A stretch of DNA of 64,000 bases, taken from the IMG/VR virus record IMGVR_UViG_3300046507_000773, positions 162,811-226,810 of that record. One strand, written 5' to 3'. The notes below the pieces were generated by a model. It was not told the origin of the DNA. It did no database searches and saw nothing but the letters and a program-made list of their open reading frames with translations. The position numbers were made by a program, and so were the translations under genes. This document shows, piece after piece, positions 21,381-59,539 of the stretch (position 1 is its first letter; each line of letters opens with the position of its first letter).

Positions 21381-21398
21381 GGTTTCTTTCTTCAGGTA

Positions 21399-22013
21399 TT
21401 AAGCAGCAACCGGCTCTTCGATGACGCGCACCTTGGTACCCAGCGGTACCGGGTTGCCGTACTTGTCTTCTTGCACGGTGGCGCCGTTGTACTGCTTGAC
21501 GTAGACTTCGATCGGGTTCTCGTCGGTGGCAGCTGCGTAGCTGGCCAGGACTTGACGGGTGTGGGCTTGCTGACGTGCCTCGGCGTCCGACAGGTACTGG
21601 ATGATGTCCGCTTTGGTCGGCAGGATGAAGGCGTCGTATTCCGACTGCCAGGCGACGTACTTCTCGACCAGGCCGTAGGTCTTGAAGACTTCGTCGTAGT
21701 CGGCTTCACGGCCGGTGCGACCGGCGTGTTCTGCGCGGATCGGCTTGATCGATTCCAGCATGCGCAGCAGGTCGGTCTGCAGCAGGCGCACTTTCATTTC
21801 CAGGTCGCCACGCTCTTCCTGGGACAGGAACGCGATCAGCTTGTGGTTCTTCAGGGCGTCCTTGAATTCCAGCGGGATCACCAGGCTTGTCAGGCAGGCG
21901 GCCGAAATCTTCTCGACTTCATCCCAGCCTTTACGGCCTTCGTCTTTGAGGTTTTGGGCCTGTTGTGCAGCTTGCTGGTCGCGGAATTTGCGAGCGTCGC
22001 TCTTCTTGGTCAT
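21399..22013 (-). CDS. Hypothetical helical protein
   Basis: SD GGAG before ATG 22013 (MTKKSDARK). Confidence 0.6.
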   Translation of the reverse strand: MTKKSDARKFRDQQAAQQAQNLKDEGRKGWDEVEKISAACLTSLVIPLEFKDALKNHKLIAFLSQEERGDLEMKVRLLQTDLLRMLESIKPIRAEHAGRTGREADYDEVFKTYGLVEKYVAWQSEYDAFILPTKADIIQYLSDAEARQQAHTRQVLASYAAATDENPIEVYVKQYNGATVQEDKYGNPVPLGTKVRVIEEPVAA

Positions 22014-22172
22014 GGTACATTTACTCCAGTGTGAACTATTATAGAAAGAGGGTGATGCCAAATCTTCTGACGATAGGAGAGCCAGTTGAGAAACTGTGGC
22101 ATTTCCGAGAAGTAACGTCAAGGCTATTAAATTTGACGTAACAGTATTTTTTAACTTTTACCTGGAGCACGC

Positions 22173-45066: not shown

Positions 45067-45696
45067 ATGGTCGGGACTTACATCCCTGAAAACCAGCGTG
45101 ACCATCGCTACGGGATCTTTCACGTTGTCTACCTGTGCAAGATCCCGTACATCCACACTCGTTCGATCGAAGACCTGCGTCGCTTTGGCATGCCGTCCTC
45201 TGGCTACAAGGAATTTGACGTAGGCCAAGAACATCAACTGGAAGACCGTTACCTGACGATCAACCAGATGCTGCAGTTCTGGCTCGACGGTGTGACGGTA
45301 CGCGTTTCTAAGTACGAAGACACGGCAAAGATCTACAACGCCATCTCCGAGTACCTCCAGCACTGGCTGAACCACATCCGCAAAACCTTCTCGACGAACC
45401 ACGTCCCGGTGGATGACCTGCAAGTGCTGGACAATTTCGCCAACGTCGTGTACGACAAAGCGAAGTACAACTTCACGACTGAAATCGTGGAATCCGCAAT
45501 GCTCAAGAAGATCGACGAAGTCTCGATTGTCAACTTCGATACCATTCTCGCTCCTCCCAAGCCTGAGGTCAAAACCTACGGCGGCCAGGTCGAAGAAGAG
45601 GAACCGCAGGAACCAATCGAGATGTACCCGAAACGCGATGGCATGGGTCAGCTCTTCTCTGAAGTGCGGGCTAAACAACGTCGTAAGGCAATCTAA
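45067..45696 (+). CDS. Conserved hypothetical protein (gp100-like)
   Basis: SD AAGGAG, operonic. Confidence 0.55.
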   Translation: MVGTYIPENQRDHRYGIFHVVYLCKIPYIHTRSIEDLRRFGMPSSGYKEFDVGQEHQLEDRYLTINQMLQFWLDGVTVRVSKYEDTAKIYNAISEYLQHWLNHIRKTFSTNHVPVDDLQVLDNFANVVYDKAKYNFTTEIVESAMLKKIDEVSIVNFDTILAPPKPEVKTYGGQVEEEEPQEPIEMYPKRDGMGQLFSEVRAKQRRKAI

Positions 45697-47060
45697 TGGA
45701 AATCGAAACCTCGTCTCTTTGGGACCAGGTTCTCTCCGTAGTCAATAGCGATCAAAAGCCGATTCATCGCTATTGGGAAGCAGACATCCATGCCAACGGT
45801 AAAACCATTACCGCGTTCAAGGTTCTGAACATTGACACGGTGCGTGATTACGAAAATGATTACGCACCAGTTCTGATGCTAGACGTCATGATCCCGATGG
45901 GTGAATACACGTACCTTGTGTATCCCTTTCAGGATAAGCTTGAAATCACTCTGTACGGCACGCCTTTGAAAGAGACGGGCCAACAGGAGGATGAGGGGCA
46001 AGACCATAGTGCTGAGCGTTATACCGCAACGCTCATCGACAAAGGCAACCCCATGATGGCAAACAACGGGAAGAATACGCCGACTCAAGAGATCCTTGAT
46101 TTGACGAACATTGCTACCGTGACGTTTCAGCTGATGAACAAAACAGTGGAGCAGATGCGCACCATGTCTGTTGGCAACAACTTCCGCGATGAAACAGTTG
46201 AGAACGCCATTAAAAGCGTTTTGACGGTGGAATCGATGAAGGTGAAAGTCGATAGCGAATTCAAGCCTAAGGGCGTGGAGATGGTGGAAGCATCGAACAA
46301 AGCAGTCAAGCGGCAGATTGCGATCCCTCATGGGTTACCACTGGTTGATGTTCCGAACTACATCCACCTGCGTCAAGGTGGTGTGTACAGTGCTGGCATG
46401 GGTTACTTCTACGAGAAGGACTACTGGTACGTCTATCCCTGTTACGACACAACGCGCTTTACGAAGTCTGAGCGCACGTTGACAGTGATCAATGTCCCAT
46501 CCAACAAGTTACCGCAAGTGGAGCGTACCTACTTGCAAAAGGGTTCTTCGCTCATCGTCTTGGCAACAGGCGACTCGAAGTTCTCTGACGATTCAACCAC
46601 GAAGCAACTCACGCATGGTAACGGCGTGATGTTCTCGGACGCCTCCAAGTTCATGACGGACTTGGGCACTACCCAAGGAAATAAGCTGGTCGCTTCTCGA
46701 GGCGCACTGCTTAACCAATTCGTCGGGACCCAGCGCGATAACGGTGTGAACTATGTACCGCTCGCCAAGGACCACATTACTGCCAATCCGTTTGAGCAGT
46801 ATTCGCAGATCGCACGGCGCGAAGGTAGCGTGTACGGTTTTGTGTGGGACAACTCAGATGCAACCCTCCTCTTTCCTGGCATGCCCGTAAAGGTGCTCTA
46901 CCTGGAAGAGGAAGACGTCAAGGAAATCTACGGGGTGATTTTGAAGGTGCACGAGTACACTGAGCTATTTGGTCAAGGCTTTTCCAGTACGCGTCACATG
47001 ACGCGGACCATGGTTTCGGTCTTTACTCAGCGAATTGTGGAGGATGCGGCAACGTCGTAA
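45696..47060 (+). CDS. Virion structural protein (gp101-like), probable baseplate hub (gp27-like)
   Basis: C-terminal LLFPGMPVKV.Y pattern of hub/late-control-D proteins; synteny. Confidence 0.55.
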   Translation: MEIETSSLWDQVLSVVNSDQKPIHRYWEADIHANGKTITAFKVLNIDTVRDYENDYAPVLMLDVMIPMGEYTYLVYPFQDKLEITLYGTPLKETGQQEDEGQDHSAERYTATLIDKGNPMMANNGKNTPTQEILDLTNIATVTFQLMNKTVEQMRTMSVGNNFRDETVENAIKSVLTVESMKVKVDSEFKPKGVEMVEASNKAVKRQIAIPHGLPLVDVPNYIHLRQGGVYSAGMGYFYEKDYWYVYPCYDTTRFTKSERTLTVINVPSNKLPQVERTYLQKGSSLIVLATGDSKFSDDSTTKQLTHGNGVMFSDASKFMTDLGTTQGNKLVASRGALLNQFVGTQRDNGVNYVPLAKDHITANPFEQYSQIARREGSVYGFVWDNSDATLLFPGMPVKVLYLEEEDVKEIYGVILKVHEYTELFGQGFSSTRHMTRTMVSVFTQRIVEDAATS

Positions 47061-47068
47061 TTGAGAAT

Positions 47069-47108
47069 ACCCACGCTGCATGCCGGGCGTGGGATTCTTT
47101 TATGCCGG
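47069..47108 (+). terminator. Terminator with TTTTATGCCG tail
   Basis: CCCACGCT...GGCGTGGG then ATTCTTTTATGCCGG. Confidence 0.7.
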
Positions 47109-47175
47109 AAATTTAAAAAGTAAATGGATATTTTATGCTTTACCCCTAGTATTTCCCACCTTTGCAGGATTGCAC

Positions 47176-47811
47176 ATGGCAAACATCGACTATACCAAGG
47201 GCCCTGAAGACATTCTGATCGACCTGATCAACGACGCGAACCCGGATAATACCCTTACCCTGGCGCAGGTTGCTCTGTCGACCCCGTCGATTGTCACCGA
47301 CGGTACGGAAGTGGGGCCATCCTTCAACAATCGCAAGACGAAGCTGACTGTTTCGGCCATTCCGGGTTCGGGTTATTCCGAGTCCGTGGACGTGCAGTAC
47401 AATCGTCTGCACTACCGTGACGTGTTCCCGACGACCGATGCTGACACCATCAAGTATCCGGTCTCGACCCACACGTTCGATCTGGCAGATCACACCAAGC
47501 TGTCGGACCTCGTTCCGCAGATCAATCAGCGCTACGGCCTGACCCTGTCGGCTGACGACTTCTGGGAGATGCCTCTCCCGACGTTCGAAGGTCTGCCTCC
47601 CTACGACGACAAGTTCGTCAAGCTTGAAGCGTTGCCCGCCTCGAAGATCTTCATCGGTGGCGTGCAGTTGAAAGTCAACCCAAACCCGTTTGACCTGGCC
47701 AACATGCCGGTGACGACCCTGAACGGTCTGGTGTATCCGACCTGGCAGGTGAAGTTCACCAACTTCGTCACTGAGACGATGGATGGCGGCCCTGGCGTTG
47801 CCTTCTGGTAA
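47176..47811 (+). CDS. Fibre-base/pilin-like virion protein, paralog 1
   Basis: LIDLINDAN...GSGYSESVDVQYNRL and VTTLNGLVY shared with paralogs. Confidence 0.65.
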   Translation: MANIDYTKGPEDILIDLINDANPDNTLTLAQVALSTPSIVTDGTEVGPSFNNRKTKLTVSAIPGSGYSESVDVQYNRLHYRDVFPTTDADTIKYPVSTHTFDLADHTKLSDLVPQINQRYGLTLSADDFWEMPLPTFEGLPPYDDKFVKLEALPASKIFIGGVQLKVNPNPFDLANMPVTTLNGLVYPTWQVKFTNFVTETMDGGPGVAFW

Positions 47812-47836
47812 AACGCTAGCGTACTAGAGAGAACTC

Positions 47837-48361
47837 ATGTCCACCTTACGACCATATGGCGGTACCAGTGCCTCGCGCTTGACCGCCATGGTCAATAGGG
47901 CGAACAAGAAGAACTTAGTGTACGGGGTCGACTTCATTTTCGGCATCCCCATCGCTGATTCTGGAGTAGACGGGCGTAATACCAAAGTTGACGTGATTCC
48001 TTTGCGTAACTTGAAAACGTACAAAGCAGCAGACGTGTTCTACCAACGACTGCCGCTTAACGTACTGAACTTGTTGCCTGAAGGGTTCACGAAACCCGTC
48101 CTCATCCATGCTGTTCCCTTCCGCATCCACCAGATCCTTCCACGGATTAATGAGGCATTAGGCCTTGACTTAATGCCGGAAGAGGTTGAGGATGCTTTGT
48201 GTGAGTCTGTGGATGAACTCTACACACTGACTGTAAAAGAAGGTAGCTTAGCTTGGCTGGCCTCCTCCGTTGAATTCGTTGCACAGCACGTCACAGACAT
48301 TCCTTTGGAAAGTATCCTGACGGTAACAATACTTAACGGGTTGCAATACAAGCCGAAGTAA
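47837..48361 (+). CDS. Fibre-base/pilin-like virion protein, paralog 2
   Basis: MVNRAN...RNTKV...DVFYQRL; ends TVTILNGLQY. Confidence 0.6.
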   Translation: MSTLRPYGGTSASRLTAMVNRANKKNLVYGVDFIFGIPIADSGVDGRNTKVDVIPLRNLKTYKAADVFYQRLPLNVLNLLPEGFTKPVLIHAVPFRIHQILPRINEALGLDLMPEEVEDALCESVDELYTLTVKEGSLAWLASSVEFVAQHVTDIPLESILTVTILNGLQYKPK

Positions 48362-48429
48362 AAAAATACTTCATCCTATGTGAGTGTCCCTCGATACTCC
48401 GATTTCAAAACCCACATTAAGGCAAAATC

Positions 48430-48951
48430 ATGGCAAACCGTGACTTCACCAAGAGCGACGTACAGATCCTCCTGGACCAAATCAACGAAGACAACACCTC
48501 GGCACTGACCATCGCGCTGGTGTCGTTCGGCGCAGTCGCTACCGACAACGGCGGCGTGCGCAACTCGAAGATCAGCGCAACCGCGCTGGCTGGCTCGGGC
48601 TACAGCGGCTCGGTCGACTTCCTGTACAACCGCGTGGACCTGGCGACCATTCCTGGCGCCCGTTCGACCGTGTTCCAGGCTGGCGATGCAACCAACCTGT
48701 CGGACCTGATCGACGAGATCAACGTCGCGTACCAGCTGAACCTGACCGCCGCCGACTTCGTCGACGCGCCGATCCCGGCTTTCCCTGGCGCTGAGCCGCA
48801 CGAAACCCAGACCATCGACCTGGTCGCCAAGGCTGGCTCGCTGATCTTCGTCGGCACGCTGACCCTGACCATCGACGCGAACGACATCCCGCTGAGCAAC
48901 GTCGTGACTACGACCACGCTGAACGGCCTGACCTACACCCAGCCGGCGTAA
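48430..48951 (+). CDS. Fibre/pilin-like virion protein, paralog 3 (likely most abundant)
   Basis: LLDQINEDN...GSGYSGSVDFLYNR; ends TTTTLNGLTY; strongest codon bias of the group; upstream TATG and downstream hairpins. Confidence 0.7.
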   Translation: MANRDFTKSDVQILLDQINEDNTSALTIALVSFGAVATDNGGVRNSKISATALAGSGYSGSVDFLYNRVDLATIPGARSTVFQAGDATNLSDLIDEINVAYQLNLTAADFVDAPIPAFPGAEPHETQTIDLVAKAGSLIFVGTLTLTIDANDIPLSNVVTTTTLNGLTYTQPA

Positions 48952-49010
48952 GCTAGGCATCGGGGTGTTCTAACCAACACCCCGTAACGGTTTCAAGTCA
49001 TTGACCGCTA

Positions 49011-49042
49011 CGAGGGGGCCTCCGGGCTCCCTCGTTTATGTC
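49011..49042 (+). terminator. Terminator
   Basis: CGAGGGGGCC-TCCG-GGCTCCCTCG then TTTATG; extra hairpin at 48962-48983. Confidence 0.65.
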
Positions 49043-49105
49043 AGCTGGGTAAGTTGTTCGCTTCATCCGTATCAACATCGATTCATTTAAGGAAAGAGAA
49101 AAGCA

Positions 49106-50224
49106 ATGGCTGACCTCGACACCCTCGAACAACAGTTCGAAGATTCCGTCAACATCATCAAGCAGGTTGCAAACGGTGACGAAACCACCACTGTCAACCT
49201 GCCGAGTGGCGGTACCGTACGTTCCCTGCGCAAACTGCAAAAGGACGCCCAAGACGAACTGGACACGGCAGTTGACCTGTTCGGCGCCAACAAAGTGGAC
49301 AAATCGTCCGCCAACGCAGCTGACGGCTTCGTCGGCCTGGTCGGCTTCAAAGCCGTGCTCATGAATGCAGCCGGCGCCTTCAAGGCTCTGCTGTCGTTCG
49401 CTGGCACCGCTGACCGTGCTATCGGCTTCCAGGACAAGGACGGCACCGTCGCCTTCGTCTCGGACATCACCGATCGCATGGGCGTGGCCAATGGCCTGGC
49501 AACCCTGGACGGCAACGGTCTCATCCCTGCAGTTCAGCTGCCGAGCTACGTCGATGACGTCATCGAAGTCGCTACCAAGGCAGCTCTGCCGGCGACTGGC
49601 GAAGCTGGCAAGATCTACATCGTGCTGGCCGACGAATCCCGTTCGAACACGCTGAGCCAATATCGCTGGGGCGGTTCCGCTTACAGCCGTATCGTCTCGG
49701 CTCCAGGTTCGACCGACGAAGTCGCTGAAGGCGCAAGCAACAAGTACTTCACCGAAAGCCGCGTGCTGGCCGCCATCCTGGCTGGCTTCTCGACTGCGAC
49801 CAACGCAGCCGTGACCGCCGCTGATTCGGTGCTGGTTGCCATCGGCAAACTGCAGGCACAAGTGACGGCAGTGCTGGCTTACGCCAAGACCTACGACTTC
49901 CATGGCTTCGTGCCGGGGAAGCCGACTGCTTCGGCTACGCTGCTGTTCGTCCGTGCTGGTCGTGCCTTTACGCTGCCTGCCGGTCTGACCGGTTCGCAGT
50001 TCAAGGCCAAGACCGCAGCTACCGCGTCGACCACCATCACGCTGTACAAGAATGGTGCGGCATTCGGCACCCTCGTGTGGGCTGCCGGTGGTGTTACCCC
50101 GACCGTTACCGCGGCTTCGGCAACTTCGTTCGCTGCTGGCGACGAGCTGACCGTCGTGGCTCCGGCTACCCAGGATACCACCCTGGCCGATGTGGCTCTG
50201 ACCCTGTTGGGCTCGCAGAACTAA
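49106..50224 (+). CDS. Tail/fibre protein 1
   Basis: N-terminal NGD..T.V...G...SL.KL anchor, LPSYVDDV fibre module, beta-rich C-terminal domain. Confidence 0.75.
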   Translation: MADLDTLEQQFEDSVNIIKQVANGDETTTVNLPSGGTVRSLRKLQKDAQDELDTAVDLFGANKVDKSSANAADGFVGLVGFKAVLMNAAGAFKALLSFAGTADRAIGFQDKDGTVAFVSDITDRMGVANGLATLDGNGLIPAVQLPSYVDDVIEVATKAALPATGEAGKIYIVLADESRSNTLSQYRWGGSAYSRIVSAPGSTDEVAEGASNKYFTESRVLAAILAGFSTATNAAVTAADSVLVAIGKLQAQVTAVLAYAKTYDFHGFVPGKPTASATLLFVRAGRAFTLPAGLTGSQFKAKTAATASTTITLYKNGAAFGTLVWAAGGVTPTVTAASATSFAAGDELTVVAPATQDTTLADVALTLLGSQN

Positions 50225-50240
50225 GCTTAATCGCCGATCA

Positions 50241-50280
50241 TAAAAGGGACAGGTAACCGAAAGGTGCCTGTCCCTTTTTA
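50241..50280 (+). terminator. Terminator between the fibre and the lectin array
   Basis: AAAAGGGACAGGT...GCCTGTCCCTTTT. Confidence 0.8.
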
Positions 50281-50301
50281 TTTGTCTCTTTAGGAAAAAC
50301 C

Positions 50302-51009
50302 ATGAGTTCCAATTTGATCCAATTGTTTTCCCAAGGTCTGTACGGACCTAGCGACCCTTACTGGGATAAGGTGATCGCTCTCCTGCACATGGACGGTGCC
50401 ATTGGTTCACAAAGCATCGTGGACCTGAAAGGGCATGCATTCTCCACTCCAGCGGGTACGGGAGTGAAAATGGTCGCAGATGCTGACGCTACTAATGGCG
50501 TTGCAGCAAACTTCGACGGCAGTGCCAACAGCTGGATTTCGAGCGCCACTGGTCTTGCAGACTACCAGTTCCACAAAGAAGACTTCACCATGGAAGCCTT
50601 CATCAATCAAAAACTGCGTTCGGCTGTCTCCCCAATCATTGCGATGGGTTACTCGCAAGCCAATGCGGGCCTGATCCTGTACGTAAATGCAAACGGCTAT
50701 CTGGACGGCTCATCCGGGCAATACAACTACCTCATCGCAAGCGGTTTGGTCGTACCACTTAACACGCGGGTTCACGTAGCCCTGACGCGTAAAGTCGGCG
50801 TTATGTCGTGCTGGCTTAACGGCCAGTTGGCAGGTCAGATTACGACCATGGAAAGTTTCGACATGTCCGATGGTCTTCTCGATATTGGCGGAACTCGTCC
50901 GGACGCTTATCGTTTCAACGGTACGATCGATGAGGTCCGTGTCACTCGCGGCGTGTCTCGTTATAACCAGCCATTCACGCCGCCTACTGGTCCGTGGCCG
51001 GAACACTAA
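50302..51009 (+). CDS. LamG/concanavalin-A-like lectin-fold protein, tip module 1
   Basis: MSSNLI start; DPYW..V..LLHMDG, DFTME, HVALTR, IDEVRVTRGVSRY. Confidence 0.8.
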   Translation: MSSNLIQLFSQGLYGPSDPYWDKVIALLHMDGAIGSQSIVDLKGHAFSTPAGTGVKMVADADATNGVAANFDGSANSWISSATGLADYQFHKEDFTMEAFINQKLRSAVSPIIAMGYSQANAGLILYVNANGYLDGSSGQYNYLIASGLVVPLNTRVHVALTRKVGVMSCWLNGQLAGQITTMESFDMSDGLLDIGGTRPDAYRFNGTIDEVRVTRGVSRYNQPFTPPTGPWPEH

Positions 51010-51018
51010 GGAAAAAAC

Positions 51019-51762
51019 ATGAGCTCCAACACAATCATTTTAGGTGGTGGCTACCTTTTGGACTATGATCCTTTTTGGAGTTCGGTAGTTGCCCTATGTC
51101 ATTTCGACGGCACCAATGGCTCCAGGGTATTTACCGAGGAGAAGGGTCATGCCATGTACTATGCTGGTAACGCAGCCTTAAGCGCGAACCAGAGCCTTTA
51201 TGGCGATACTTCTGCATATCTGGCAGGTAGTGGCGACTACTTCGCCATCAGTGCCAGTAATAACGGCAACGGTAGCGACTTCTCGCTCGCTAGCGACGAC
51301 TTCACTCTTGAGATCGCTTACCGTCATGCTCCTAATACCTGGGGTAAGATTGTCGGCAACTATCAATGGCAGGCAGGCTATAGGGGCGGTTGGTACTTGG
51401 GTGCAGGTACTGACGGCAGTCTGGCCTTTGTTACTTCCACCACACTCGTTAGTGGCGGTGCAGGAACAATTAAAGATGGCCAGTGGAATCGCATCGCTGT
51501 GGTTCGTCGGGGTACCACCTTCTATCTCTACGTCGAAGGCGTTCTGGTGGCTCAGGCTGTTCCTGCTGCGCCGACCCAAAACATTCCTGATCCAGGTACT
51601 GCTTGGGCGAAGAACCTCCGCTTCGGTTGCAAGATCACTGATGGCGCCAGCTTCGATGATTTCCTTCCGGGCTATTACGACGAATTCCGTTTGACCCGCG
51701 GCGTTGCCCGTTATTTGGGAAATAGCTATTCCCTGGCAGCTGCGGGATTCCCTAACAAGTAA
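51019..51762 (+). CDS. LamG-like protein, tip module 2
   Basis: MSSNTI; DPFW, HFDG, DFTLE, DEFRLTRGVARY. Confidence 0.8.
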   Translation: MSSNTIILGGGYLLDYDPFWSSVVALCHFDGTNGSRVFTEEKGHAMYYAGNAALSANQSLYGDTSAYLAGSGDYFAISASNNGNGSDFSLASDDFTLEIAYRHAPNTWGKIVGNYQWQAGYRGGWYLGAGTDGSLAFVTSTTLVSGGAGTIKDGQWNRIAVVRRGTTFYLYVEGVLVAQAVPAAPTQNIPDPGTAWAKNLRFGCKITDGASFDDFLPGYYDEFRLTRGVARYLGNSYSLAAAGFPNK

Positions 51763-51771
51763 GGAAACAGC

Positions 51772-52521
51772 ATGAGCTCTAACAGCATTCTCCTGGCCCA
51801 ACGGCCAAGCATTTTCGTGCCAGGTAAATCGGTACTGTTCGATGGTGCCGATCACATCCGTCTTGCTTACGATAGTCGCATTGGTGACTTCGGTAATGGC
51901 GAATGGACGATGGAAGGTTTCATCAAGTTCCTCGCAGCTCCAACTGACGATGAAGCGATTATGGCCTTCGGTAACGGTGGCGGTTCCCAGTCGCCCTACC
52001 TTCGACTCTGCTACAGTCCGAGTGGTAATTGCTTCTATGCTGATGAAGCCAATAGCGTTGTCGGTTTGTGGTCGGCAGTCGGTAACACCATCGGCCCGAT
52101 CGACTACAATCACTTCTACCACGTCGTCGCAGAGCGCTACAACGGGCAGATCACACTTTATGTGGACGGCAACTTCGATACGACCAAAGGCGCTTACCGT
52201 AATAGCTACGGTGGCTGGAACAGTGCCAGCTCCGTTCACCAGAGCGGCATGCAGTTGGTTGCAGGTTCACTCGTCTACGGTTCGCGTGGTTTCATTGAAA
52301 CTGCCAACGCTCTGCTCTCGAACCTGCGCGTCACCAAAGGCCGGGCAGTCTACAAAGGTAACTTCACGCCCCCGACTTCGAAACTCGAAGCTGGTGAGGG
52401 CACGACCGTACTGCTGTGCAATTCCGACACCCTCGTTGATGCAAGTCCTTACAACTGGCCGCTGATTCTGGACAACTCGACGCCAACCATCAGCGACGTG
52501 TCACCTTTTGTTTCTAACTGA
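51772..52521 (+). CDS. LamG-like protein, tip module 3
   Basis: MSSNSI; WTMEGF, HVVAER, SNLRVTKGRAVY...FTPP. Confidence 0.78.
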   Translation: MSSNSILLAQRPSIFVPGKSVLFDGADHIRLAYDSRIGDFGNGEWTMEGFIKFLAAPTDDEAIMAFGNGGGSQSPYLRLCYSPSGNCFYADEANSVVGLWSAVGNTIGPIDYNHFYHVVAERYNGQITLYVDGNFDTTKGAYRNSYGGWNSASSVHQSGMQLVAGSLVYGSRGFIETANALLSNLRVTKGRAVYKGNFTPPTSKLEAGEGTTVLLCNSDTLVDASPYNWPLILDNSTPTISDVSPFVSN

Positions 52522-52548
52522 AGCTTATCCTGAACAGTAACAAAGATA

Positions 52549-52578
52549 GGGGTTTGCTCATAAGGCGAACCTCTTTTT
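52549..52578 (+). terminator. Terminator inside the lectin array
   Basis: GGTTTGC-TCATAAG-GCGAACC plus TCTTTTT. Confidence 0.7.
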
Positions 52579-52636
52579 CCAAACCAATAAGAAGAAGACT
52601 ACGCTAGTAGTCCAACTCAGACCCTAGGAAGATAGC

Positions 52637-52729
52637 ATGTCTAACAATTTTATTCAAGTACTGGGTACCCAGTCAGACCCCTTCTGGAACTTCGTCAACG
52701 TGCTGTTGGATTTTGATGGAGTGAAATAG
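52637..52729 (+). pseudogene. 30-aa truncated tip module (MSNNFIQVLGTQSDPFWNFVNVLLDFDGVK)
   Basis: Translated by hand; AGGA SD; keeps the family N-terminal motif and DPFW...FDG, then stops 2 nt before the next paralog. Confidence 0.75.
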
Positions 52730-52731
52730 TC

Positions 52732-53535
52732 ATGAGTTCCAATAGCATCATTCTCGCAGCCATTATCGCTGCTTACCCAGGTTCCAATGAAACGAGCATT
52801 TCCGATCCTTATTGGCAAAATGTTGCTCTCCTGATGCATGCGGACGGAACAGACGCAGCAAATTTCTTTACCGATGCCACAGGTAAGTCGACTCTGACGA
52901 CAGTTGCAGTAGGGTCTTCCAAACCCTATACGAGTACACGAAAGAGTTTTGCTGGTCCCACCAGCGCTTATTTCGATGGCATGGGTGGTCACATCAACTC
53001 GAGTCTGAATCCTGACTTCAGCTTCCCGGCTGGAACAGACTTCACCATTGAGGCATGGGTCAACATGACCAGTCTTGTCGGTTCAGGTCAAGTTCCTCGC
53101 TCCTGTATCATTTTCGGTTTCGATGCCACAAGTGGCGATGGCAGCGGTCCCAGGACTTGGTCGATTTTTGTCAGTAACAATGGTGCTCTAATTTTCGAAA
53201 ATGCTGCTTCTGACGGATCGCGCAATTTTGCTATGTCCTCGGCGGCTGCGGCCATTAGGGTTAATAGCTGGCAACATGTTGCGATCGTTCGCAAGGGTAC
53301 TACGATGTACATGTTCATTGATGGCAGGTCCATTGCGTTCACGAAGAGCGGACCTGCCAGTGTGAATGTGGATGTATTAAGCTCTGGCTATATCCGCTTG
53401 GGACGCCTGTACACCTCTAGCGATTGGGATTATCGCCTCAACGGCTACATTGACGAGGTGCGCATTACTAAAGGCGTGGCTCGTTATAGTGCCGATTTCA
53501 CTCCTCCACCAGGGGCATTTGCCAACAACGCTTAA
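52732..53535 (+). CDS. LamG-like protein, tip module 4
   Basis: MSSNSI; DPYW, DFTIEAWV, WQHVAIVR, IDEVRITKGVARY. Confidence 0.8.
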   Translation: MSSNSIILAAIIAAYPGSNETSISDPYWQNVALLMHADGTDAANFFTDATGKSTLTTVAVGSSKPYTSTRKSFAGPTSAYFDGMGGHINSSLNPDFSFPAGTDFTIEAWVNMTSLVGSGQVPRSCIIFGFDATSGDGSGPRTWSIFVSNNGALIFENAASDGSRNFAMSSAAAAIRVNSWQHVAIVRKGTTMYMFIDGRSIAFTKSGPASVNVDVLSSGYIRLGRLYTSSDWDYRLNGYIDEVRITKGVARYSADFTPPPGAFANNA

Positions 53536-53560
53536 GTACTGTTTATTCTAGGAAGATATC

Positions 53561-54268
53561 ATGTCTAACAATAGCATCATCACCCCAGGCCTCTTTGCCA
53601 CGGCGTATGGTCCGAACCTGTTTGATCCCGACCATGACCCGTATTGGAATAAGGTTGCGACCCTTATGCATTTCGACGGAGCCCAAGGTAACTCCTCCTT
53701 CGTCGATGTGAAAGGTCGCCCCATCACCAACTACGGCGTAATTACCGATTTGGGAAATCCAGCAATTGCTCCATCAACAGCCTACTTCGGTGGTGCCGCC
53801 CAGGCTATGATCATTAGTCAGGTGGATGACAACCAGACCGGTGACTTCACGATTGAATGGTTCGGTAAGTGGGAGACCATCGGCAACTGTACCCTGTTCG
53901 ATACTCGCCCGCAGTCCACCAATGGTCCATACATGGACTTTTTCTACTCCAGTGGTGGTGTCGGTATCTGGTTTAACAATGCAACTGCAGTGTATGCTGC
54001 TTTTGTACCTGCGCAGAATAGGACCTATCACCTTGCATTGTCTCGTAAAGGTGGAATTATTCGCTTCTTCATCGACGGCGCGATCTACTTCACCTGGAAC
54101 TATGCTGGTGTCGTGGCCATCCCTCGTTTCTTCTTGGGTGGCAACGGATACAACCAGGCACAGGACTGGTACAAAGGCCGCATGAGTGAATTCCGTTATA
54201 CCAAAGGTGTCGGTCGTTATGAGAATTCGTTCATTCCAGTCTACGCACGCTTCCCAGCTTCACTGTAA
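53561..54268 (+). CDS. LamG-like protein, tip module 5
   Basis: MSNNSI; DPYW, HFDG, DFTIE, EFRYTKGVGRY. Confidence 0.8.
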   Translation: MSNNSIITPGLFATAYGPNLFDPDHDPYWNKVATLMHFDGAQGNSSFVDVKGRPITNYGVITDLGNPAIAPSTAYFGGAAQAMIISQVDDNQTGDFTIEWFGKWETIGNCTLFDTRPQSTNGPYMDFFYSSGGVGIWFNNATAVYAAFVPAQNRTYHLALSRKGGIIRFFIDGAIYFTWNYAGVVAIPRFFLGGNGYNQAQDWYKGRMSEFRYTKGVGRYENSFIPVYARFPASL

Positions 54269-54276
54269 GGATTTGT

Positions 54277-54981
54277 ATGTCTAACAATACCATCATTACT
54301 CCAGGCCTGTTTGCGCTGGGAGCTGCGAACAATCTTTTCGACCCCAACCACGATCCCTACTGGAATAAGGTAGCAACCCTGATGCACTTTGACGGCGCGC
54401 AGGGTAACAGCGTCTTCACGGATGTGAAAGGGCGTGGCGTTACCAACTCTGGCGTCATCACTGATCTGGGTAGCCCGGCAATTGCTCCTGCATCGGCGTA
54501 CTTCAACGGCAGTTCGGGCATGTCGATTGCCCAGGCAGATGACAACCAGACGGGTGATTTTACGGTCGAATTCTTCGCAAAATGGGAAACGATCACAAAT
54601 TGCTCGCTGGTCGATAGTCGACCCCTGAGCAACAATGGCGCGTTTTTGGACTTCTTCTACTATTCAGGGTCATTTGGTATTTACATGAATAGCACCACCC
54701 AAGCTGCGGCAGCATACGCAGTTACGCTCAATAAAACTTACCACGTTGCAGTGTCGCGTAAGAGTGGTGTCGTTCGCATGTTCCTGGATGGCGTGTTGCT
54801 CTTTACCTGGAACTATGCTGGTGTACTGTCGATGCCTCGCTTCTTCCTGGGCGGTAACGGTTATAATCAGTCCATCGAATTCTTCAAAGGGCGCATGAGT
54901 GAATTCCGCTACACCAAAGGCGTGGGTCGTTACGAAAATCCGTTCGTGCCGGTGTACGCACGCTTCCCAGCATCCCTCTAA
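54277..54981 (+). CDS. LamG-like protein, tip module 6 (recent duplicate of module 5)
   Basis: Near-identical ends to 53561 (ends VYARFPASL). Confidence 0.8.
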   Translation: MSNNTIITPGLFALGAANNLFDPNHDPYWNKVATLMHFDGAQGNSVFTDVKGRGVTNSGVITDLGSPAIAPASAYFNGSSGMSIAQADDNQTGDFTVEFFAKWETITNCSLVDSRPLSNNGAFLDFFYYSGSFGIYMNSTTQAAAAYAVTLNKTYHVAVSRKSGVVRMFLDGVLLFTWNYAGVLSMPRFFLGGNGYNQSIEFFKGRMSEFRYTKGVGRYENPFVPVYARFPASL

Positions 54982-54995
54982 ACAAAGGAATTACC

Positions 54996-55715
54996 ATGGC
55001 TTGCAATCTCATCCAAATTGCAGCAGTATTGTCAACTCTTGTCTATCCCGGCATTCAACCTACACTGAGTCAGCTCATGGTGTTGGCCCACATGGATGGT
55101 GCCAATGGGACATTAGCGAGCGGTAACATTGCCGAGCGTGGTGTGGTTACAGGCACCAATGCAGTCTATACAACGGCAACGAAAGCATTCGGTAGCGCCT
55201 CGATGGATTTTCAAGGCGGCGGTAGTCACTATCTGAGTGCTGACCTGAGCTCTAGTCTCATCGGCTCTGTTGACTTCACCTTAGAAATAATGGTGCGGCT
55301 AAAGTCGTACAACACGACGGCCGGCGGTTACTCCGGTATCATGGCGGGCGGCGCCGGTAACACGGGCCTGTGTCTTTACGTAAAGTCCGACGGTACCGTT
55401 GTATTGGCGGATGTTCAATCTGCTCGCCTTAGCACGGTTGCAGGTACTGTGAAACTGGGCGTTTGGACGCACATCGCTCTCACTCGCTCTGGCAGTACAT
55501 TCGTGATCTGGGTCGATGGCAAAACCGCGGCAACTGGTAACTTGGCCAATTGGCAAATTCTGACAAACTCCCTTGCTTTAGGCTTTACCGCAGTTGCGGG
55601 TTCGGGCTATTACATGGATGGCTTCATTGATGAATTTCGCTACTGTAAAGGACTGGCTGTGTATAGCCAGCCTTTTACGCCACCCACTCAGCCTTTCATT
55701 ATTCCATCCGCTTAA
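54996..55715 (+). CDS. LamG-like protein, tip module 7
   Basis: MACNLI; HMDG, DFTLE, WTHIALTR, IDEFRY. Confidence 0.78.
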   Translation: MACNLIQIAAVLSTLVYPGIQPTLSQLMVLAHMDGANGTLASGNIAERGVVTGTNAVYTTATKAFGSASMDFQGGGSHYLSADLSSSLIGSVDFTLEIMVRLKSYNTTAGGYSGIMAGGAGNTGLCLYVKSDGTVVLADVQSARLSTVAGTVKLGVWTHIALTRSGSTFVIWVDGKTAATGNLANWQILTNSLALGFTAVAGSGYYMDGFIDEFRYCKGLAVYSQPFTPPTQPFIIPSA

Positions 55716-55724
55716 GGACGCAGC

Positions 55725-56291
55725 ATGTCTAACAACAGTATCATCATTTCCGGTGCAGGAGTCGGCGTGAGCAAAAACGGTGCCATGGCACTGGGCGGAA
55801 CGTTCGATCCAGCATGGACTGCAAGCGGTGTGTCGTACTCTGCCGATCTCTTGACTGCCTCGATCGGTGGCAGTAAGACCACCGGTAGTACTCAGCACAT
55901 CACGGCCGGTAAGACCTACTTCGAAATGACAGTCACCGATTGGCCTACTCGCTATGGACCAATCATTGGTATTGCACCTGCAGCGACAGCTGTCGATGGT
56001 TATACTACACCGGGCGCGGTCGCTATCTGGCTGGTAGATGGAGGTTCAGTCAATCTCTACGACTCCGGCGGCCAAGTAGGCGCCTTCCCGAATGTCAACT
56101 TCGGCCTGAACGATACCGTTGGCTTCATGGTTGATTTGGATGGCGACGTTATCGCTATTTACAAGAACGGAGTCCCAACAGGCATTACTCATCCGATCAC
56201 GGGCAGTGATTATCTGGCATTCGCATCGTCAGCAGGCGGCGCTTATCCGGTAACAGTGACTGCCAACTTCGGCGCTAAGTCATTCTTGTAA
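55725..56291 (+). CDS. SPRY/B30.2-like protein, tip module 8
   Basis: MSNNSI; GKTYFEMTV, GIA, DTVGFMVDLD, YKNG, ANFG. Confidence 0.75.
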   Translation: MSNNSIIISGAGVGVSKNGAMALGGTFDPAWTASGVSYSADLLTASIGGSKTTGSTQHITAGKTYFEMTVTDWPTRYGPIIGIAPAATAVDGYTTPGAVAIWLVDGGSVNLYDSGGQVGAFPNVNFGLNDTVGFMVDLDGDVIAIYKNGVPTGITHPITGSDYLAFASSAGGAYPVTVTANFGAKSFL

Positions 56292-56300
56292 GGAGACTCC

Positions 56301-56948
56301 GTGTCTAGTAATTCGATTATCCTGGCGCAAGCGCAACTTGCGGCAGATCTGAAAACTGTTTTGCTGATGCACTTTCAGAACACTTACGCTGACGATACCG
56401 GCAAAACTGTCACTGTAAGTGGCAGTCCCATCTTCAGTGGTGGTGCAACTGCCGGCACGCAGTGTCTGCGCCTCATTGGTTCTGAAAATCTTTCGGTCGG
56501 TCCACACAGTGATTTCATCTTCGGCAATGATGACTTCACGATGGAATGTTTCCTCTACAACACGCAGCAAACCTCTAGCGGTGTTGAGAATCTCATTAGT
56601 CTGTCTAACGGCACAGCCGGCATTGGGATGGGCTACTATCCAGGCAACAATCTCGTCTACCTGGCCAGTGGAACAACTGTACTGGCTACGGCAGCTTTGG
56701 GTTCAGCCACCAACTGGCCTCACGTTGCCTACAGCAGAAAAGGAAACGTGGGTCGTCTCTTCATCCGTGGCGTAAAGGTTGCCGAGGTTGCCGATAATTC
56801 ACCTATCAACAGTGGCATGTGTACTGTTGGTAAGGCGTCGGTCGGTGGTCCGTATAACTGGTACGGCTATCTCGATGAAGTGCGAGTATCGAAAGGTGCT
56901 CGTTACTGGGATAACTTCGCAGCACCCGTGGCTCCTTTGAGTCTTTAA
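56301..56948 (+). CDS. LamG-like protein, tip module 9 (GTG start)
   Basis: SD AAGGAG; (M)SSNSIIL; DFTMECF, HVAYSR, LDEVRVSKG. Confidence 0.78.
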   Translation: MSSNSIILAQAQLAADLKTVLLMHFQNTYADDTGKTVTVSGSPIFSGGATAGTQCLRLIGSENLSVGPHSDFIFGNDDFTMECFLYNTQQTSSGVENLISLSNGTAGIGMGYYPGNNLVYLASGTTVLATAALGSATNWPHVAYSRKGNVGRLFIRGVKVAEVADNSPINSGMCTVGKASVGGPYNWYGYLDEVRVSKGARYWDNFAAPVAPLSL

Positions 56949-56955
56949 GCATCTG

Positions 56956-56983
56956 GCCCTCCCTTCGGGGAGGGTTTTTATGC
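56956..56983 (+). terminator. Terminator ending the lectin array
   Basis: CCCTCCC-TTCG-GGGAGGG then TTTTTATG. Confidence 0.8.
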
Positions 56984-57089
56984 TCATCAGTATTTTTTGC
57001 TTTATCGTATGTTGCTGGAACAGCTCCTTTTTATCCAGGTAAAAAAGTTGCTTTGGTGACATCTTTTTATAACCACGAGGAAATGCCGA

Positions 57090-57587
57090 ATGACTACGGC
57101 TAAAGACTTGCTGTTTCAGTTAATCAACGAGTCCAATCATTCCAAGCATCCTTTGAACAACAATGACGTGTCCTTCAGTGACCCACAATTGGATATCAGC
57201 ACAGCAAAGAATTCTAAAATCCAGCTCACTGCACGACCCGGCTCAGGTTACAAAGGAAGTATTTGGATATCCTACAGTCGAGAATCATTAGGGAATGTAC
57301 ATCTTCCGACCCAAATCCTGTCGGAAGTTACGTTCACCGTCGAAAGTATTTTGGCAGCCCTAAACGCAAAGCTGCTTGTCCCGATCACGCTTGAAGATCT
57401 GGAACCTTTCACACTCCCTCTCCTGAACGTCGGTGATATCCTCACCCTCGATCTCTCGGCCCGTAGTGGATCTTTGGCATGGATTGCCGCTACAACGATT
57501 TCGCTCTTGTACGGCCTCCCGCCCAACATTGACGATGTGTACACAATTTTCAATTCGGAACTACCCGTCAAATTTCCACCTAAATAA
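57090..57587 (+). CDS. Fibre-base/adaptor protein, paralog 4
   Basis: LFQLINESN...NSKI...GSGYKGSIWISYSR. Confidence 0.65.
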   Translation: MTTAKDLLFQLINESNHSKHPLNNNDVSFSDPQLDISTAKNSKIQLTARPGSGYKGSIWISYSRESLGNVHLPTQILSEVTFTVESILAALNAKLLVPITLEDLEPFTLPLLNVGDILTLDLSARSGSLAWIAATTISLLYGLPPNIDDVYTIFNSELPVKFPPK

Positions 57588-57598
57588 CGAGGGAATAA

Positions 57599-58366
57599 AT
57601 GTCAACAGTGACACCTGACCCCACAGTAGTGGCTGTCATCGCGCGACTAAAAGCAGCCGTAGCACTGGCTGAAGCTTGGACGCAAGGTGACGTAGCCCTA
57701 GATGTGGTAGGTACAGCAGGCACGTACCCATCCCTAGCGAAGTTGATGAAGTCAACCCAAGACCAAATCAATGCGCTATTGACCAATCCCACTCTTCTTG
57801 GTACCGGTGGTTTCACGCCGCCCAAGGGAACAACTGCCCAGCGTGAAGCTGCCGCAGCAAAGGGGCGTGTTCGTTACAACACGACTCTTGACACAATTGA
57901 GATTTTGACGGCCAATGGTTGGCTCTCTTTACAGAACCTTGTGATCTCAACGTATCGTGGAAGTGTTGTGCCCTCCACTGGCACGACCAGGATTCCTTAC
58001 GACACGACGCCTCCGGCAGTAACGGAAGGCACGCAACTTTGGTCGGTCACAGTAGCGCCCAAGGTAATTGGCTCCATCATGTCGATTGACTTTGCAACAA
58101 TGGTCGATAATAGTAACAATGGAAATCTGTCGATGGCGATTTTCAAAGGCAATACGTTAATTGGTGTTACGGGTATTAACATTGCTGGTAACAAAGCAGC
58201 CGGCATGGCCATTAGCGTGAATGATCCAGTCACCTCTCTTACTCCTGTTACCTACAGCTGCCGATTCGGTAATACAGCCGGCACCTGGTATCAAGGTCGT
58301 GGTTCAACTACCACGTATGGCGGCGCCATTACAAATGGCTGGAAGATTGACGAGGTGCTGCCATGA
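57599..58366 (+). CDS. Short tail/fibre protein 2
   Basis: GD...V....G.YPSLAKLMK anchor; GTTAQR...G.VRYNTTL fibre motif; beta-rich tip. Confidence 0.7.
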   Translation: MSTVTPDPTVVAVIARLKAAVALAEAWTQGDVALDVVGTAGTYPSLAKLMKSTQDQINALLTNPTLLGTGGFTPPKGTTAQREAAAAKGRVRYNTTLDTIEILTANGWLSLQNLVISTYRGSVVPSTGTTRIPYDTTPPAVTEGTQLWSVTVAPKVIGSIMSIDFATMVDNSNNGNLSMAIFKGNTLIGVTGINIAGNKAAGMAISVNDPVTSLTPVTYSCRFGNTAGTWYQGRGSTTTYGGAITNGWKIDEVLP

Positions 58367-58908
58367 ACTACATTGATCTGATCGGTGAATTCTTCCCGAA
58401 CGTACAAGCGTGGTGCGAAGGCGATCCTTCGAATTACGACGACGTCCAAGTCCACGAAAATGGCGATCCGCTTCCAAGCAAGGAACAACTCGACATCATC
58501 GACTGGGCAAACCGTCAGCACCTGAAGTGGTTGGAAATCCGAAACGAGCGAGACCGTCGTTATTACCAGGGCGTTTATCTCGATGGCGTCGACGGTAATT
58601 TCTATTGGTTCTGGACCGATCTCGATACCCGCAGCAAATACGGGATGTACGACATCACAATTCGTAGCGCCAATCTTGGTCCCAACGTTGTCTTGGACAA
58701 CTGGAAAACCATGACGGGTGCTTTTACTCCCATGACGGTTCAACAGCTCTATCGTGTTATTGGAGCAGCAGTCATGAACGAGAAGGCCATCTTCAATACG
58801 GCCGAGGCAAAGAACGCCGAGATGATGTTGCTCGACGATCCGGATACCTACGACAATGTCTACGCTGGCTGGCCTACTTGCTACAGCGATACGCTTACCC
58901 AAGCGTAG
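58363..58908 (+). CDS. Tail fibre assembly chaperone-like protein (DUF4376-like)
   Basis: ATGA overlap with the fibre gene; IRNERDRR...GV...W.TD..TR...WKTM.G.F pattern. Confidence 0.65.
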   Translation: MNYIDLIGEFFPNVQAWCEGDPSNYDDVQVHENGDPLPSKEQLDIIDWANRQHLKWLEIRNERDRRYYQGVYLDGVDGNFYWFWTDLDTRSKYGMYDITIRSANLGPNVVLDNWKTMTGAFTPMTVQQLYRVIGAAVMNEKAIFNTAEAKNAEMMLLDDPDTYDNVYAGWPTCYSDTLTQA

Positions 58909-58913
58909 TAACG

Positions 58914-58942
58914 TCCCTCCCTTCGGGGAGGGCTTTATGCCG
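58914..58942 (+). terminator. Terminator with TTTATGCCG tail
   Basis: CCCTCCC-TTCG-GGGAGGG-CTTTATGCCG; same core as 56956. Confidence 0.8.
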
Positions 58943-58990
58943 ACTCTAATCTTTTGACCTATAAAAGTAATTTTTTACTGCGAGCTTGCC

Positions 58991-59530
58991 ATGAAAATTA
59001 ATCCCAATCTGTCGGGGATGGGTAACGTCTTAGGGCTGATCAACTCGGCAAATCCGGGAAAAGATTTCACCACAGCCCAAGTCTACGTCAAGAGTGTCAC
59101 TCCCCGCACGCCTGATTCCAATCCCTACAACAGCACAGCAGTCGTCAGTGGAACCACCGACGGACCGTACAAGAACGACCAGGTAGTCTTCTACAACAGG
59201 AGGCCTATCACAGAAGCCGTAGAAAGCCCTGTGGTGAGTTATCAGGTCGACGAGCTCACAACCTTGGCCGACTTAGTACAAATGGTCTCCAGGGGCCTTA
59301 AAATCGTTTCTAGCGAAGTCGAGCTTGTTGGCTTCAAAACGGAAAAGGATAGCTCGGTTAGCACGATGACCTTGCAGCCCATTGCCAATTCTCTCCTCTA
59401 CGTTGATACGTTCGATATCGTTCTCGTGTGGTCAGGAGAAGAAGTACAAGAAGCCGTCCAAGTTCTCTGGGCTGAAGACGAACTCAACAAATTGATCAAC
59501 GTAACTATGCCCAGTCGCGGTTACCTGTAA
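58991..59530 (+). CDS. Fibre-base/adaptor protein, paralog 5
   Basis: LGLINSAN...YNSTA...GPY...VFYNR. Confidence 0.65.
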   Translation: MKINPNLSGMGNVLGLINSANPGKDFTTAQVYVKSVTPRTPDSNPYNSTAVVSGTTDGPYKNDQVVFYNRRPITEAVESPVVSYQVDELTTLADLVQMVSRGLKIVSSEVELVGFKTEKDSSVSTMTLQPIANSLLYVDTFDIVLVWSGEEVQEAVQVLWAEDELNKLINVTMPSRGYL

Positions 59531-59539
59531 GGAAAAGCC

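Follow-up and report, generated by a model that had tools for sequence, protein, structure and literature searches.

Short lectin-type genes with a common N-terminal peptide behind a tail-fibre gene of a giant phage: a possible library of exchangeable adhesins

Gene content of the array and its relatives

The window analysed in this study, the last 64 kb of the 226,810-bp contig IMGVR_UViG_3300046507_000773, belongs to a giant (phiKZ-like) phage; it has four split genes for the beta/beta' subunits of multisubunit RNA polymerase, together with a DNA polymerase and virion proteins of the phiKZ type. Five genes of the DUF7941 family, which has been described as Chimalliviridae-specific in a 2026 preprint (10.64898/2026.04.21.720040), were recognised by Pfam within these 64 kb. 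The closest cultured phage is Burkholderia phage FLC9, with 42% protein identity on a conserved structural protein. The subject of this study is an array of nine closely packed plus-strand genes, encoding proteins (modules) of 188–267 amino acids (aa), which directly follows the gene of a 372-aa tail fibre (fibre 1, 49106–50224). The modules start with a common seven-residue peptide, referred to here as the tag, and carry putative lectin-type heads.

Four relatives with the same locus were obtained by protein searches with the SPRY module of the array (orthologues 48–70% identical) and with fibre 1's C-terminal domain. These are the metagenomic contigs L099 (102 kb, nine array modules), L100 (86 kb, 11 modules), L102 (8.3 kb, at least nine modules) and L104 (8.1 kb, at least five modules), the last two of which end inside the array; the 227-kb contig of the window carries nine modules and a remnant. 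The order of a D1-like DUF7941 gene, a fibre-1 orthologue and the array is common to all five lineages, with the array directly 3' of the fibre-1 orthologue in each, and a D4-like DUF7941 gene follows the array in all three lineages in which the array end is visible. When the array and one core gene were compared by megablast with 50,697 phage records, no DNA-level match was obtained. Pattern scans with fibre 1, module 5 and a 454-aa gene upstream returned the phage's own contig as the sole close match, the 51 matches of an IMG/VR scan with the tag pattern included a relative on that contig only, and no match came from scanning metagenomes with modules 6 and 7 as a pair. Other contigs bearing module 5 represent the same phage, with 0–2 mismatches and no usable variation. 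The cultured phages with several laminin G-like (LamG) domains (DSL-LC04, pPa_SNUABM_DT01, RSF1, RS138, SCUT-S3 and Rhizobium phages) were rejected as relatives of the array; their LamG domains are found inside large tail proteins or dispersed over the genome, with no tagged array.

Ten open reading frames, nine genes and a remnant, occupy 50302–56948 on the plus strand as a sequence-only reading of this DNA had proposed, and their first six residues are exactly those which it had listed. In order, these are module 1 (50302–51009, tag MSSNLI, 235 aa), which is 48% identical to L100:5710; module 2 (51019–51762, MSSNTI, 247 aa), which has no orthologue in the other lineages; module 3 (51772–52521, MSSNSI, 249 aa); the remnant (52637–52729), in which the tag MSNNFI and the start of a LamG head run for 30 codons to a stop; module 5 (52732–53535, MSSNSI, 267 aa); module 6 (53561–54268, MSNNSI, 235 aa) and its duplicate, module 7 (54277–54981, MSNNTI, 234 aa); module 8 (54996–55715, MACNLI, 239 aa); module 9 (55725–56291, MSNNSI, 188 aa); and module 10 (56301–56948, GTG start, MSSNSI, 215 aa). 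The stop codon of an array gene mostly overlaps the TAAGGA ribosome-binding site of the next.

Eight of these modules carry a LamG head of the Laminin_G_3 family (PF13385), with scores of 31.9–72.7 bits against a cut-off of 27.6 (53, 44 and 34 bits for modules 1 to 3, 72.7 for module 5, 31.9 for module 6, 54.5 for module 8 and 48.4 for module 10). Module 9 had been read as a SPRY domain. Its own score falls below the PF00622 cut-off (23.9 against 26.3 bits), as does that of its L099 orthologue (21.7 bits), but the L100 orthologue passes with 28.7 bits, and the SPRY modules of L102 pass with 27.4 and 32.2 bits. The orthologues of module 9 are 70%, 60%, 59% and 48% identical to it, the L100 protein being the one at 60%, and its probable SPRY membership rests on this orthology. 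A third head type, Lcl_C-like and below the Pfam cut-off, was found in the relatives. None of the array modules matched the GP38 (PF05268) or DUF7941 families in Pfam. With a limit of 45% identity, 35 families can be distinguished among the 44 modules of the five lineages, and six of these families are common to more than one lineage.

The AlphaFold2 (AF2) model of module 5 is an all-beta jelly roll with a mean predicted local distance difference test (pLDDT) score of 83.8. Its Foldseek matches are concanavalin A (ConA)-like domains, such as lectin-like subdomains of clostridial toxin binding regions, carbohydrate-binding module family 40 (CBM40) and domain 4 of an arabinanase, at 13–18% identity. 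A functional meaning of the clostridial matches was rejected, as such identities reflect the generic ConA-like fold. From their folds the array proteins appear to be of lectin type, and they would bind sugars.

Terminators had been noted before and inside the array, and terminator-like hairpins were indeed found on the plus strand at both places. The first lies in the gap between fibre 1 and the array (50242–50278) and is followed by a U-run; the RNA fold of 50222–50304 has a free energy of -28.3 kcal/mol and a z-score of -4.46. The second, inside the array (52548–52574), has an 11-bp stem followed by UUUUU and divides the array into blocks of three and six genes, although the z-score of the whole spacer is just -1.96. 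A further, strong hairpin stands at the array end (56955–56976), with a 9-bp stem including six G-C pairs, a UUCG loop and a U-run. The weaker codon bias claimed for the array was modestly supported, with a pooled G+C content at third codon positions (GC3) of 0.56 and an effective number of codons (Nc) of 51, against a GC3 of 0.61–0.71 and an Nc of about 41–55 in credible core genes, but several neighbouring genes are equally weak. A number of long open reading frames in the window (51178–52239, 43867–45678 and 8347–11139 on the minus strand, 19872–22034 on the plus strand, and others) have a G+C content at first codon positions of about 0.75–0.80 and a lower GC3. These have the appearance of antisense shadows, with the genuine genes on the opposite strand; one of them spans modules 2 and 3.

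The tag and the exchange of heads

The consensus of the tag is M-S-[S/N/C]-N-x-I-[Q/I]. In the ten-way alignment from the window, M1, N4 and I6 do not vary and a single sequence of the ten lacks S2, whereas the module bodies are 17–33% identical to module 1, save for the 70% identical pair at 53561 and 54277; the conserved first residues on diverged bodies described earlier are thus borne out. When M[SA][SNC]N.I was sought at any ATG, GTG or TTG codon on both strands, it occurred in the 64-kb window only at the ten array starts. A scan for the motif over both strands of all five loci (121.5 kb) returned 44 start-codon matches, all of them array genes, and none elsewhere; the tag heads 44 out of 44 modules. 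M1 and N4 are present in all 44, S2 in 43 and I6 in 41; position 3 is N, S or C and position 7 is mainly Q or I.

Across the 44 modules, six codons belonging to two codon families serve for Ser2, AAT or AAC for N4 and ATT or ATC for I6. In the window, four genes have AGY at Ser2 and five have TCT, with wide differences among codons 3–7. The retention of Ser2 through six codons therefore indicates selection on the peptide. A nucleotide-level element such as a downstream box or recombination site was rejected because the codons of the tag vary and its residues do not. The tag was also rejected as a signal peptide, since the sequences have neither a basic N-region nor a long hydrophobic core.

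The tag occurs on three folds (Laminin_G_3, SPRY and Lcl_C-like), and its variants switch inside a single head family. In the AF2 model of module 5, run with a 62-sequence alignment, it lies outside the LamG fold: residues 1–20 have a pLDDT below 50, and the core from residue 21 onwards is at about 90. None of 119 database homologues of module 5 bears the tag. It is constant across lineages in which the N-terminal parts of fibre 1 are 17–36% identical, and the nucleotide identity of the leader region is 63–96% over 25–38 nt. Together, these observations support the view that the N-terminal peptide is a selected, fold-independent element.

Many homologues of module 5 are stand-alone proteins of 220–260 aa, and the two which were inspected each occur as a lone gene at the close of a tail module. 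Stand-alone LamG proteins from elsewhere (P0005–P0116) group by conserved leaders of their own (MSWLITG..., MISRSTDIK..., MSPLTES... and MTIRSNGSYIG...), and leader-addressed LamG adhesins may be a general design. It was also observed that genes following a fibre of the fibre-1 head family in siphophage-like loci (L106:10608, L106:12173 and L108:1728) share the N-terminus MA-x-L-[WF]-x-DG-[FC]-D-x-Y, and that the FLC9 paralogues gp311–gp314 (L001:2702-9507) have a similar start, MAxHDLW....

A comparison of array contents across relatives, which the sequence-only reading had suggested, revealed sharp differences between phages that are otherwise about 90% identical, and this fits exchangeable binding heads. 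Between the window and L099 the flanking genes are 74–94% identical and fibre 1 is 90% identical, yet only modules 3, 6/7 and 9 (three to four of the nine) have L099 orthologues, at 78%, 85%/75% and 70% identity respectively, and the best matches of the others reach 28–36%. The ratio of nonsynonymous to synonymous substitution rates (dN/dS) is 0.16 for module 3 and its orthologue L099:7724, and 0.06 for module 6 and L099:8564; modules 6 and 7 are 70% identical to each other in amino acids and 72–76% in nucleotides. Overall, the orthologous modules have dN/dS values of 0.06–0.16 and a synonymous divergence (dS) of 1.0–2.2, and they are therefore functional genes under purifying selection; positive selection was not seen. 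The dS of the two DUF7941 genes D1 and D3, of fibre 1 and of the 454-aa gene upstream is 0.18–0.58 against L099, and the higher values of the modules point to mosaic exchange. The divergence of the modules would accordingly stem from exchange and not from rapid adaptation of resident copies. Along the locus, dS against L099 is 0.18–0.58 in a left block (45696–50224) and from 1.0 to above 4 in most of a right block (50302–63109), where the orthologous modules, a 255-aa fibre-like gene, a DUF4376 gene and fibre 2 are the genes of high dS; this step indicates a recombination boundary near the array start.

The remnant consists of the tag and the first LamG motif followed by a stop, and module 5 starts two bases past that stop. 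Its ribosome-binding site and start (52624–52648) are identical to those of module 6 (53548–53572) at 24 of 25 positions, and the coding sequences diverge past codon 4. It reads as the scar of a cassette replacement. In agreement with the earlier claim that heads are alternated without a recombinase or diversity-generating retroelement (DGR), no Pfam family of recombinases or reverse transcriptases was found among the called genes of the loci. No template/variable repeat pairs were detected in the array locus; the inverted repeats within 49000–57200 amount to a single weak pair of 26 nt (73% complementary), and long repeats of near identity are absent.

Fibre 1 and the possible docking sites

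Fibre 1 (49106–50224, plus strand) matches tail-fibre families in PHROG and is a paralogue of the longer fibre 2 downstream. The PHROG matches are generic, and it has no Pfam family and no sequence match to solved structures. Three parts were distinguished: a variable N-terminal part (residues 1–124), a shaft module (125–258) and a conserved C-terminal head (259–372; 49880–50221), which is the candidate docking hub. In the five-lineage alignment the head is 63–95% identical between lineages, against 17–82% for the N-terminal part and 40–91% for D1, and no other protein segment of the locus is as well conserved; within the fibre, the head also has the lowest dN/dS, 0.07. The N-terminal part has been swapped between lineages, and the shaft has been replaced in L104. 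Such a constant head on a variable N-terminus is, judged from these alignments, the reverse of the usual pattern of a receptor-binding fibre. Many unrelated contigs of IMG/VR also have the fibre-1 shaft module, with identities of up to 71%.

The AF2 model of residues 240–372 comprises a helix and a jelly roll (mean pLDDT 94.4). Its best Foldseek match is 9rkv, the tail fibres of Agrobacterium phage 7-7-1, with a query TM-score (TMq) of 0.69, followed by C1q/BclA trimeric heads. Fifteen residues of the head and neck are invariant in six array-group sequences (for five of which the context is confirmed) but rare among the 49 other head homologues; by sequence position and model secondary structure, the helix, the first strands and the last strand contain most of them. 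The array-specific residues include D240, S241, A245, I246, K248, K261, F265, H266, T349, Q356, L368 and Q371. Head homologues at 51–62% identity in siphophage-like, non-chimallivirus loci have neither the array nor the tag.

Taken together, the array may represent a library of tagged lectin-type adhesins addressed to one common site on the tail, most likely the head and neck of fibre 1, a proposal to which we give about an even chance. Each module would be a small, single-domain accessory adhesin (LamG or SPRY, and Lcl_C-like in relatives), built from the seven-residue tag, a floppy linker of about 10–25 residues and a binding head. The tag would act as an address label, kept by selection on the protein so as to match a single shared site of the tail apparatus, so that any head bearing it could be mounted there. 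Recombination would gain, lose, duplicate and replace heads, with the tag and the receiving site staying fixed. Among possible receiving sites, the conserved jelly-roll head at the C-terminal end of the fibre-1 trimer, with the neck, is the most likely, and this head would then be a hub rather than a variable receptor binder. Incorporation of the modules into the virion, their docking, the receiving site, sugar binding and mixed display on one virion are what we infer from the features above. A bolder form, in which a universal seven-residue tag loads dozens of unrelated domains on one fibre head and the virion is a mosaic of 9–11 adhesin types, is put forward tentatively and is somewhat doubtful. 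As for the common plug for the fibre C-terminal domain proposed by the sequence-only reading, a selected and fold-independent tag stands, and its fit to that domain is only circumstantial, coming from co-occurrence and the conservation of the head.

Several observations weigh against docking on fibre 1. A terminator-like hairpin stands between fibre 1 and the array, and the same head family functions without any array in other phages. The conserved fibre head could merely bind a conserved host receptor. There are five lineages in all, two of them on short contigs, and for this reason the co-occurrence of the array with fibre 1 may be due to shared ancestry. In FLC9, moreover, LamG domains are fused to DUF7941 and other scaffolds and not to a fibre of the fibre-1 type.

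The last point bears on another possible receiving site, a DUF7941 scaffold or the peripheral baseplate, with the array made up of split DUF7941–LamG fusions that decorate the proposed DUF7941 filaments. DUF7941 is a family of 2,413 cluster representatives, often in covalent tandem, and its five members in the window are all on the plus strand. D1 (47176–47811, 211 aa, 109 bits) has orthologues in L099, L100, L102 and L104 that are 40–91% identical; D2 (47837–48361, 174 aa, 61.9 bits) is 45% identical to FLC9 gp326; and D3 (48430–48951, 173 aa, 121 bits), directly 5' of fibre 1, is 54% identical to FLC9 gp325. D4 (57090–57587, 165 aa, 65.3 bits) adjoins the 3' end of the array and is 81% identical to its counterpart in L099 and 36% to that in L100, and D5 (58991–59530, 179 aa, 50.7 bits), directly 5' of fibre 2, is 88% identical to L099:14803. 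The presence of a D1-like gene just 5' of fibre 1 in every lineage (with D2 and D3 intervening in the window and L099) and of a D4-like gene after the array in all three that can be judged, the D4 position being occupied in L099 and L100 as well, is in keeping with docking on DUF7941. So is the FLC9 interval syntenic to the array, from gp325 (D3) to gp309 (D4), which holds LamG-bearing proteins throughout; in gp307, gp308 and gp323 of this phage, DUF7941 and Laminin_G_3 are joined covalently in one polypeptide, both above the Pfam cut-offs. The preprint, which deals with phage Goslar, predicts that the N-terminal domains of DUF7941 proteins bind a disordered peptide of a partner, proposes polymerisation through docking of a disordered linker on the next N-terminal domain, and assigns the family to the peripheral baseplate, some members having C-terminal domains that bind carbohydrate (10.64898/2026.04.21.720040).

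Nevertheless, D1 (40–45%) and D4 (36%) of the distant lineages are far less conserved than the fibre-1 head (63–78%), and the tag is invariant. A resemblance of the tag to the DUF7941 linker that had been seen by eye (S-N-x-I, G-L-x-Y) was rejected, as the tags scored no better than their own shuffles against a hidden Markov model (HMM) of the linker built from 77 proteins (Mann-Whitney p = 0.73). In FLC9 gp307 and gp308 the LamG domain directly follows DUF7941, with no tag-like peptide in between. A likeness of the module 6/7 leader to the domain–LamG junction of FLC9 gp314 was anecdotal and was dropped; no homologue of the FLC9 N-terminal domain in question exists in the window. Docking of the array proteins on DUF7941 is the main rival to the fibre-1 head, and it seems rather unlikely.

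The tag might instead be a signal recognised by a dedicated chaperone or an assembly factor, by an enzyme that processes or modifies the proteins, or in intracellular sorting, with the proteins acting off the virion, for example as lectin-like proteins which bind host envelope glycans during infection or lysis. The disordered tag of the monomer model would fit any peptide-recognition system, and given the hairpin bounds, lower GC3 and weaker codon bias of the array, its expression may differ from that of the fibre. Accessory loci, too, typically contain arrays of small genes with a high turnover. The array is, however, part of a same-strand run of genes for fibres and for DUF7941 and DUF4376 proteins, and the same LamG domain is found within large tail and virion proteins of many phages. 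Stand-alone LamG genes elsewhere close tail modules, and the tag lacks the features of a signal peptide. This reading, with the proteins acting off the virion, is distinctly unlikely.

That the shared N-terminus is functionless, a leftover of tandem duplication or of cassette exchange with a crossover at the 5' end, is highly improbable: the remnant does show replacement downstream of the tag, with a ribosome-binding site and start near-identical to those of module 6, and leader variants do switch within one head family, but M1, N4 and I6 are fixed on bodies of 17–33% identity and three folds, Ser2 is kept through six codons of two families, the leader identities are too low and too short for homogenisation alone, and the tag is unchanged where the fibre-1 N-terminal parts have diverged to 17–36% identity.

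Downstream of D4, a 255-aa fibre-like protein (57599–58366, plus strand) without a Pfam family is 74% identical to L099:13403, and its residues 60–255 are 45% identical to the C-terminus of a 1081-aa fibre of L100. It is followed on the same strand by a DUF4376 protein (58363–58908, 181 aa, 41.6 bits in Pfam; a tail protein in PHROG), 79% identical to L099:14179, and, after D5, by fibre 2 (59540–63109, 1189 aa). The latter is a long paralogue of fibre 1 with a diverged head according to BLASTP, and holds copies of the shaft module at about residues 179–289, 673–810 and 939–1060, the middle one 56% identical to fibre 1. All three fibre-like genes (49106, 57599 and 59540) are directly preceded by a short DUF7941 gene (48430–48951, 57090–57587 and 58991–59530), which suggests that DUF7941–fibre pairs are assembly units. 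The called start of the L099 D4 orthologue (12785–13390, 201 aa) falls inside the array terminator, and the true start is probably about 38 codons later, as in the window.

Behind fibre 2 lies a Gly/Tyr-rich, Lcl_C-like gene (63153–64000, plus strand; 29.7 bits, below the cut-off), which is cut by the window end. The protein at the same place in L099 (18966–19778) matches the T-even GP38 adhesin family PF05268 (53.8 bits against a cut-off of 25). In L100, a 1273-aa fibre is followed by two Lcl_C-like paralogues (293–1348 and 1367–2398) with near-identical first 34 or so residues, and on sequence grounds this pair looks like a second case of tip adhesins with a common N-terminus. Given the GP38-family or Lcl_C-like gene behind fibre 2, separately encoded tip adhesins seem to be a general habit of this group.

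Known systems and biological meaning

The closest precedent for a docking peptide comes from podophages of Klebsiella, namely KP32, K11 and KP34, in which the second receptor-binding protein (RBP2) attaches to the RBP1 branching domain through a conserved N-terminal docking peptide (PMC13352976). For KP32 RBP2, docking by residues 1–29 is proven, and the protein needs them to be incorporated into virions; placed on a foreign enzyme domain, the peptide mounted that domain on the virion, and its predicted contacts are residues 2, 3, 5 and 6 (PMC13352976). The array resembles this system in having an extreme N-terminal peptide on separately encoded putative receptor-binding proteins, independently of the body (44 of 44 modules, three folds, 35 families), and the KP32 contacts are near the invariant positions 2, 4 and 6 of the array tag. 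In contrast, the KP32-type system has one secondary RBP, with a 29-residue peptide on a large trimeric depolymerase, while here there are 5–11 small heads with a seven-residue tag and putative docking. Its hub is a T4gp10-like branching domain near the N-terminus of RBP1, whereas the candidate hub here is a C-terminal jelly-roll head. No T4gp10-like branching domain was detected in fibre 1, whose C-terminal domain is a C1q-like jelly roll.

The gp38 of T-even phages is a separately encoded adhesin on the distal end of gp37, with its gene directly after the fibre gene. The array likewise follows a fibre gene, and fibre 2 with its GP38-family or Lcl_C-like gene shows the same order. T-even fibres, however, carry one gp38 each, attached through an N-terminal domain, compared with at least nine alternatives and a seven-residue tag here. 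The comparison with gp38 made in the sequence-only reading holds as an analogy only; the modules do not match the GP38 family.

The 'fibre cloud' of DUF7941 proteins in Chimalliviridae and the FLC9 fusions share with the array the phage family, the neighbourhood and the LamG head type, and assembly there is also proposed to proceed by docking of a disordered peptide on a globular domain (10.64898/2026.04.21.720040). The FLC9 heads are fused to DUF7941, unlike the array heads, which stand alone behind a fibre gene with a tag that is unlike the DUF7941 linker. Sets of tandem-encoded RBPs that vary between relatives are also known from the tailspike proteins TSP1-4 of CBA120 (Ackermannviridae; PMC11414711) and the hyperbranched fibres of phiKp24 (PMC9700779), and such RBPs assemble on one virion through conserved N-terminal parts (PMC11414711, PMC9700779). 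Those are big trimeric enzymes with large N-terminal attachment domains, in contrast to the minimal peptide and heads of about 200 residues in the array.

The long fibre gp015 of phage 7-7-1, whose tip is the best structural match of the fibre-1 head, ends in a triple jelly roll (PDB 9rkv), and the garland proteins gp014 bind its middle and C-terminal domains (PMC12796354). There is one garland type, a homodimer, with no tag or array described (PMC12796354). The garland protein was not among the top structural matches of the LamG model. In Streptomyces umbrella toxin particles, one scaffold reportedly shows several paralogous, diversified UmbA lectin domains that set the target range. The concept is alike, but these are bacterial toxins with another adaptor system and no sequence relation to the array.

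The concept of a docking peptide is thus known, and what is new here is the minimal tag, the many small heads of lectin fold and a candidate hub without a T4gp10-like domain. The docking idea can be tested directly, as there is a defined tag, a defined candidate hub and a set of 15 candidate contact residues. If true, it would explain the hot spot of gene turnover within an otherwise conserved structural module, and would represent an economical solution to host range, in which one constant hub and a seven-residue label serve a library of exchangeable lectin-type heads. It would also be a third multi-receptor architecture in the Chimalliviridae, beside the gp131-type fibres and the proposed DUF7941 filament cloud. 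In the bolder form with a universal tag, host range would evolve by swaps of cassettes of about 700 bp, with the hub and the tag remaining constant, and the phage would have a plug-and-play display of natural origin that differs from branching-domain RBP complexes, DGRs and DUF7941 fusions. As other groups of stand-alone LamG proteins have leaders of their own, the principle may be widespread.

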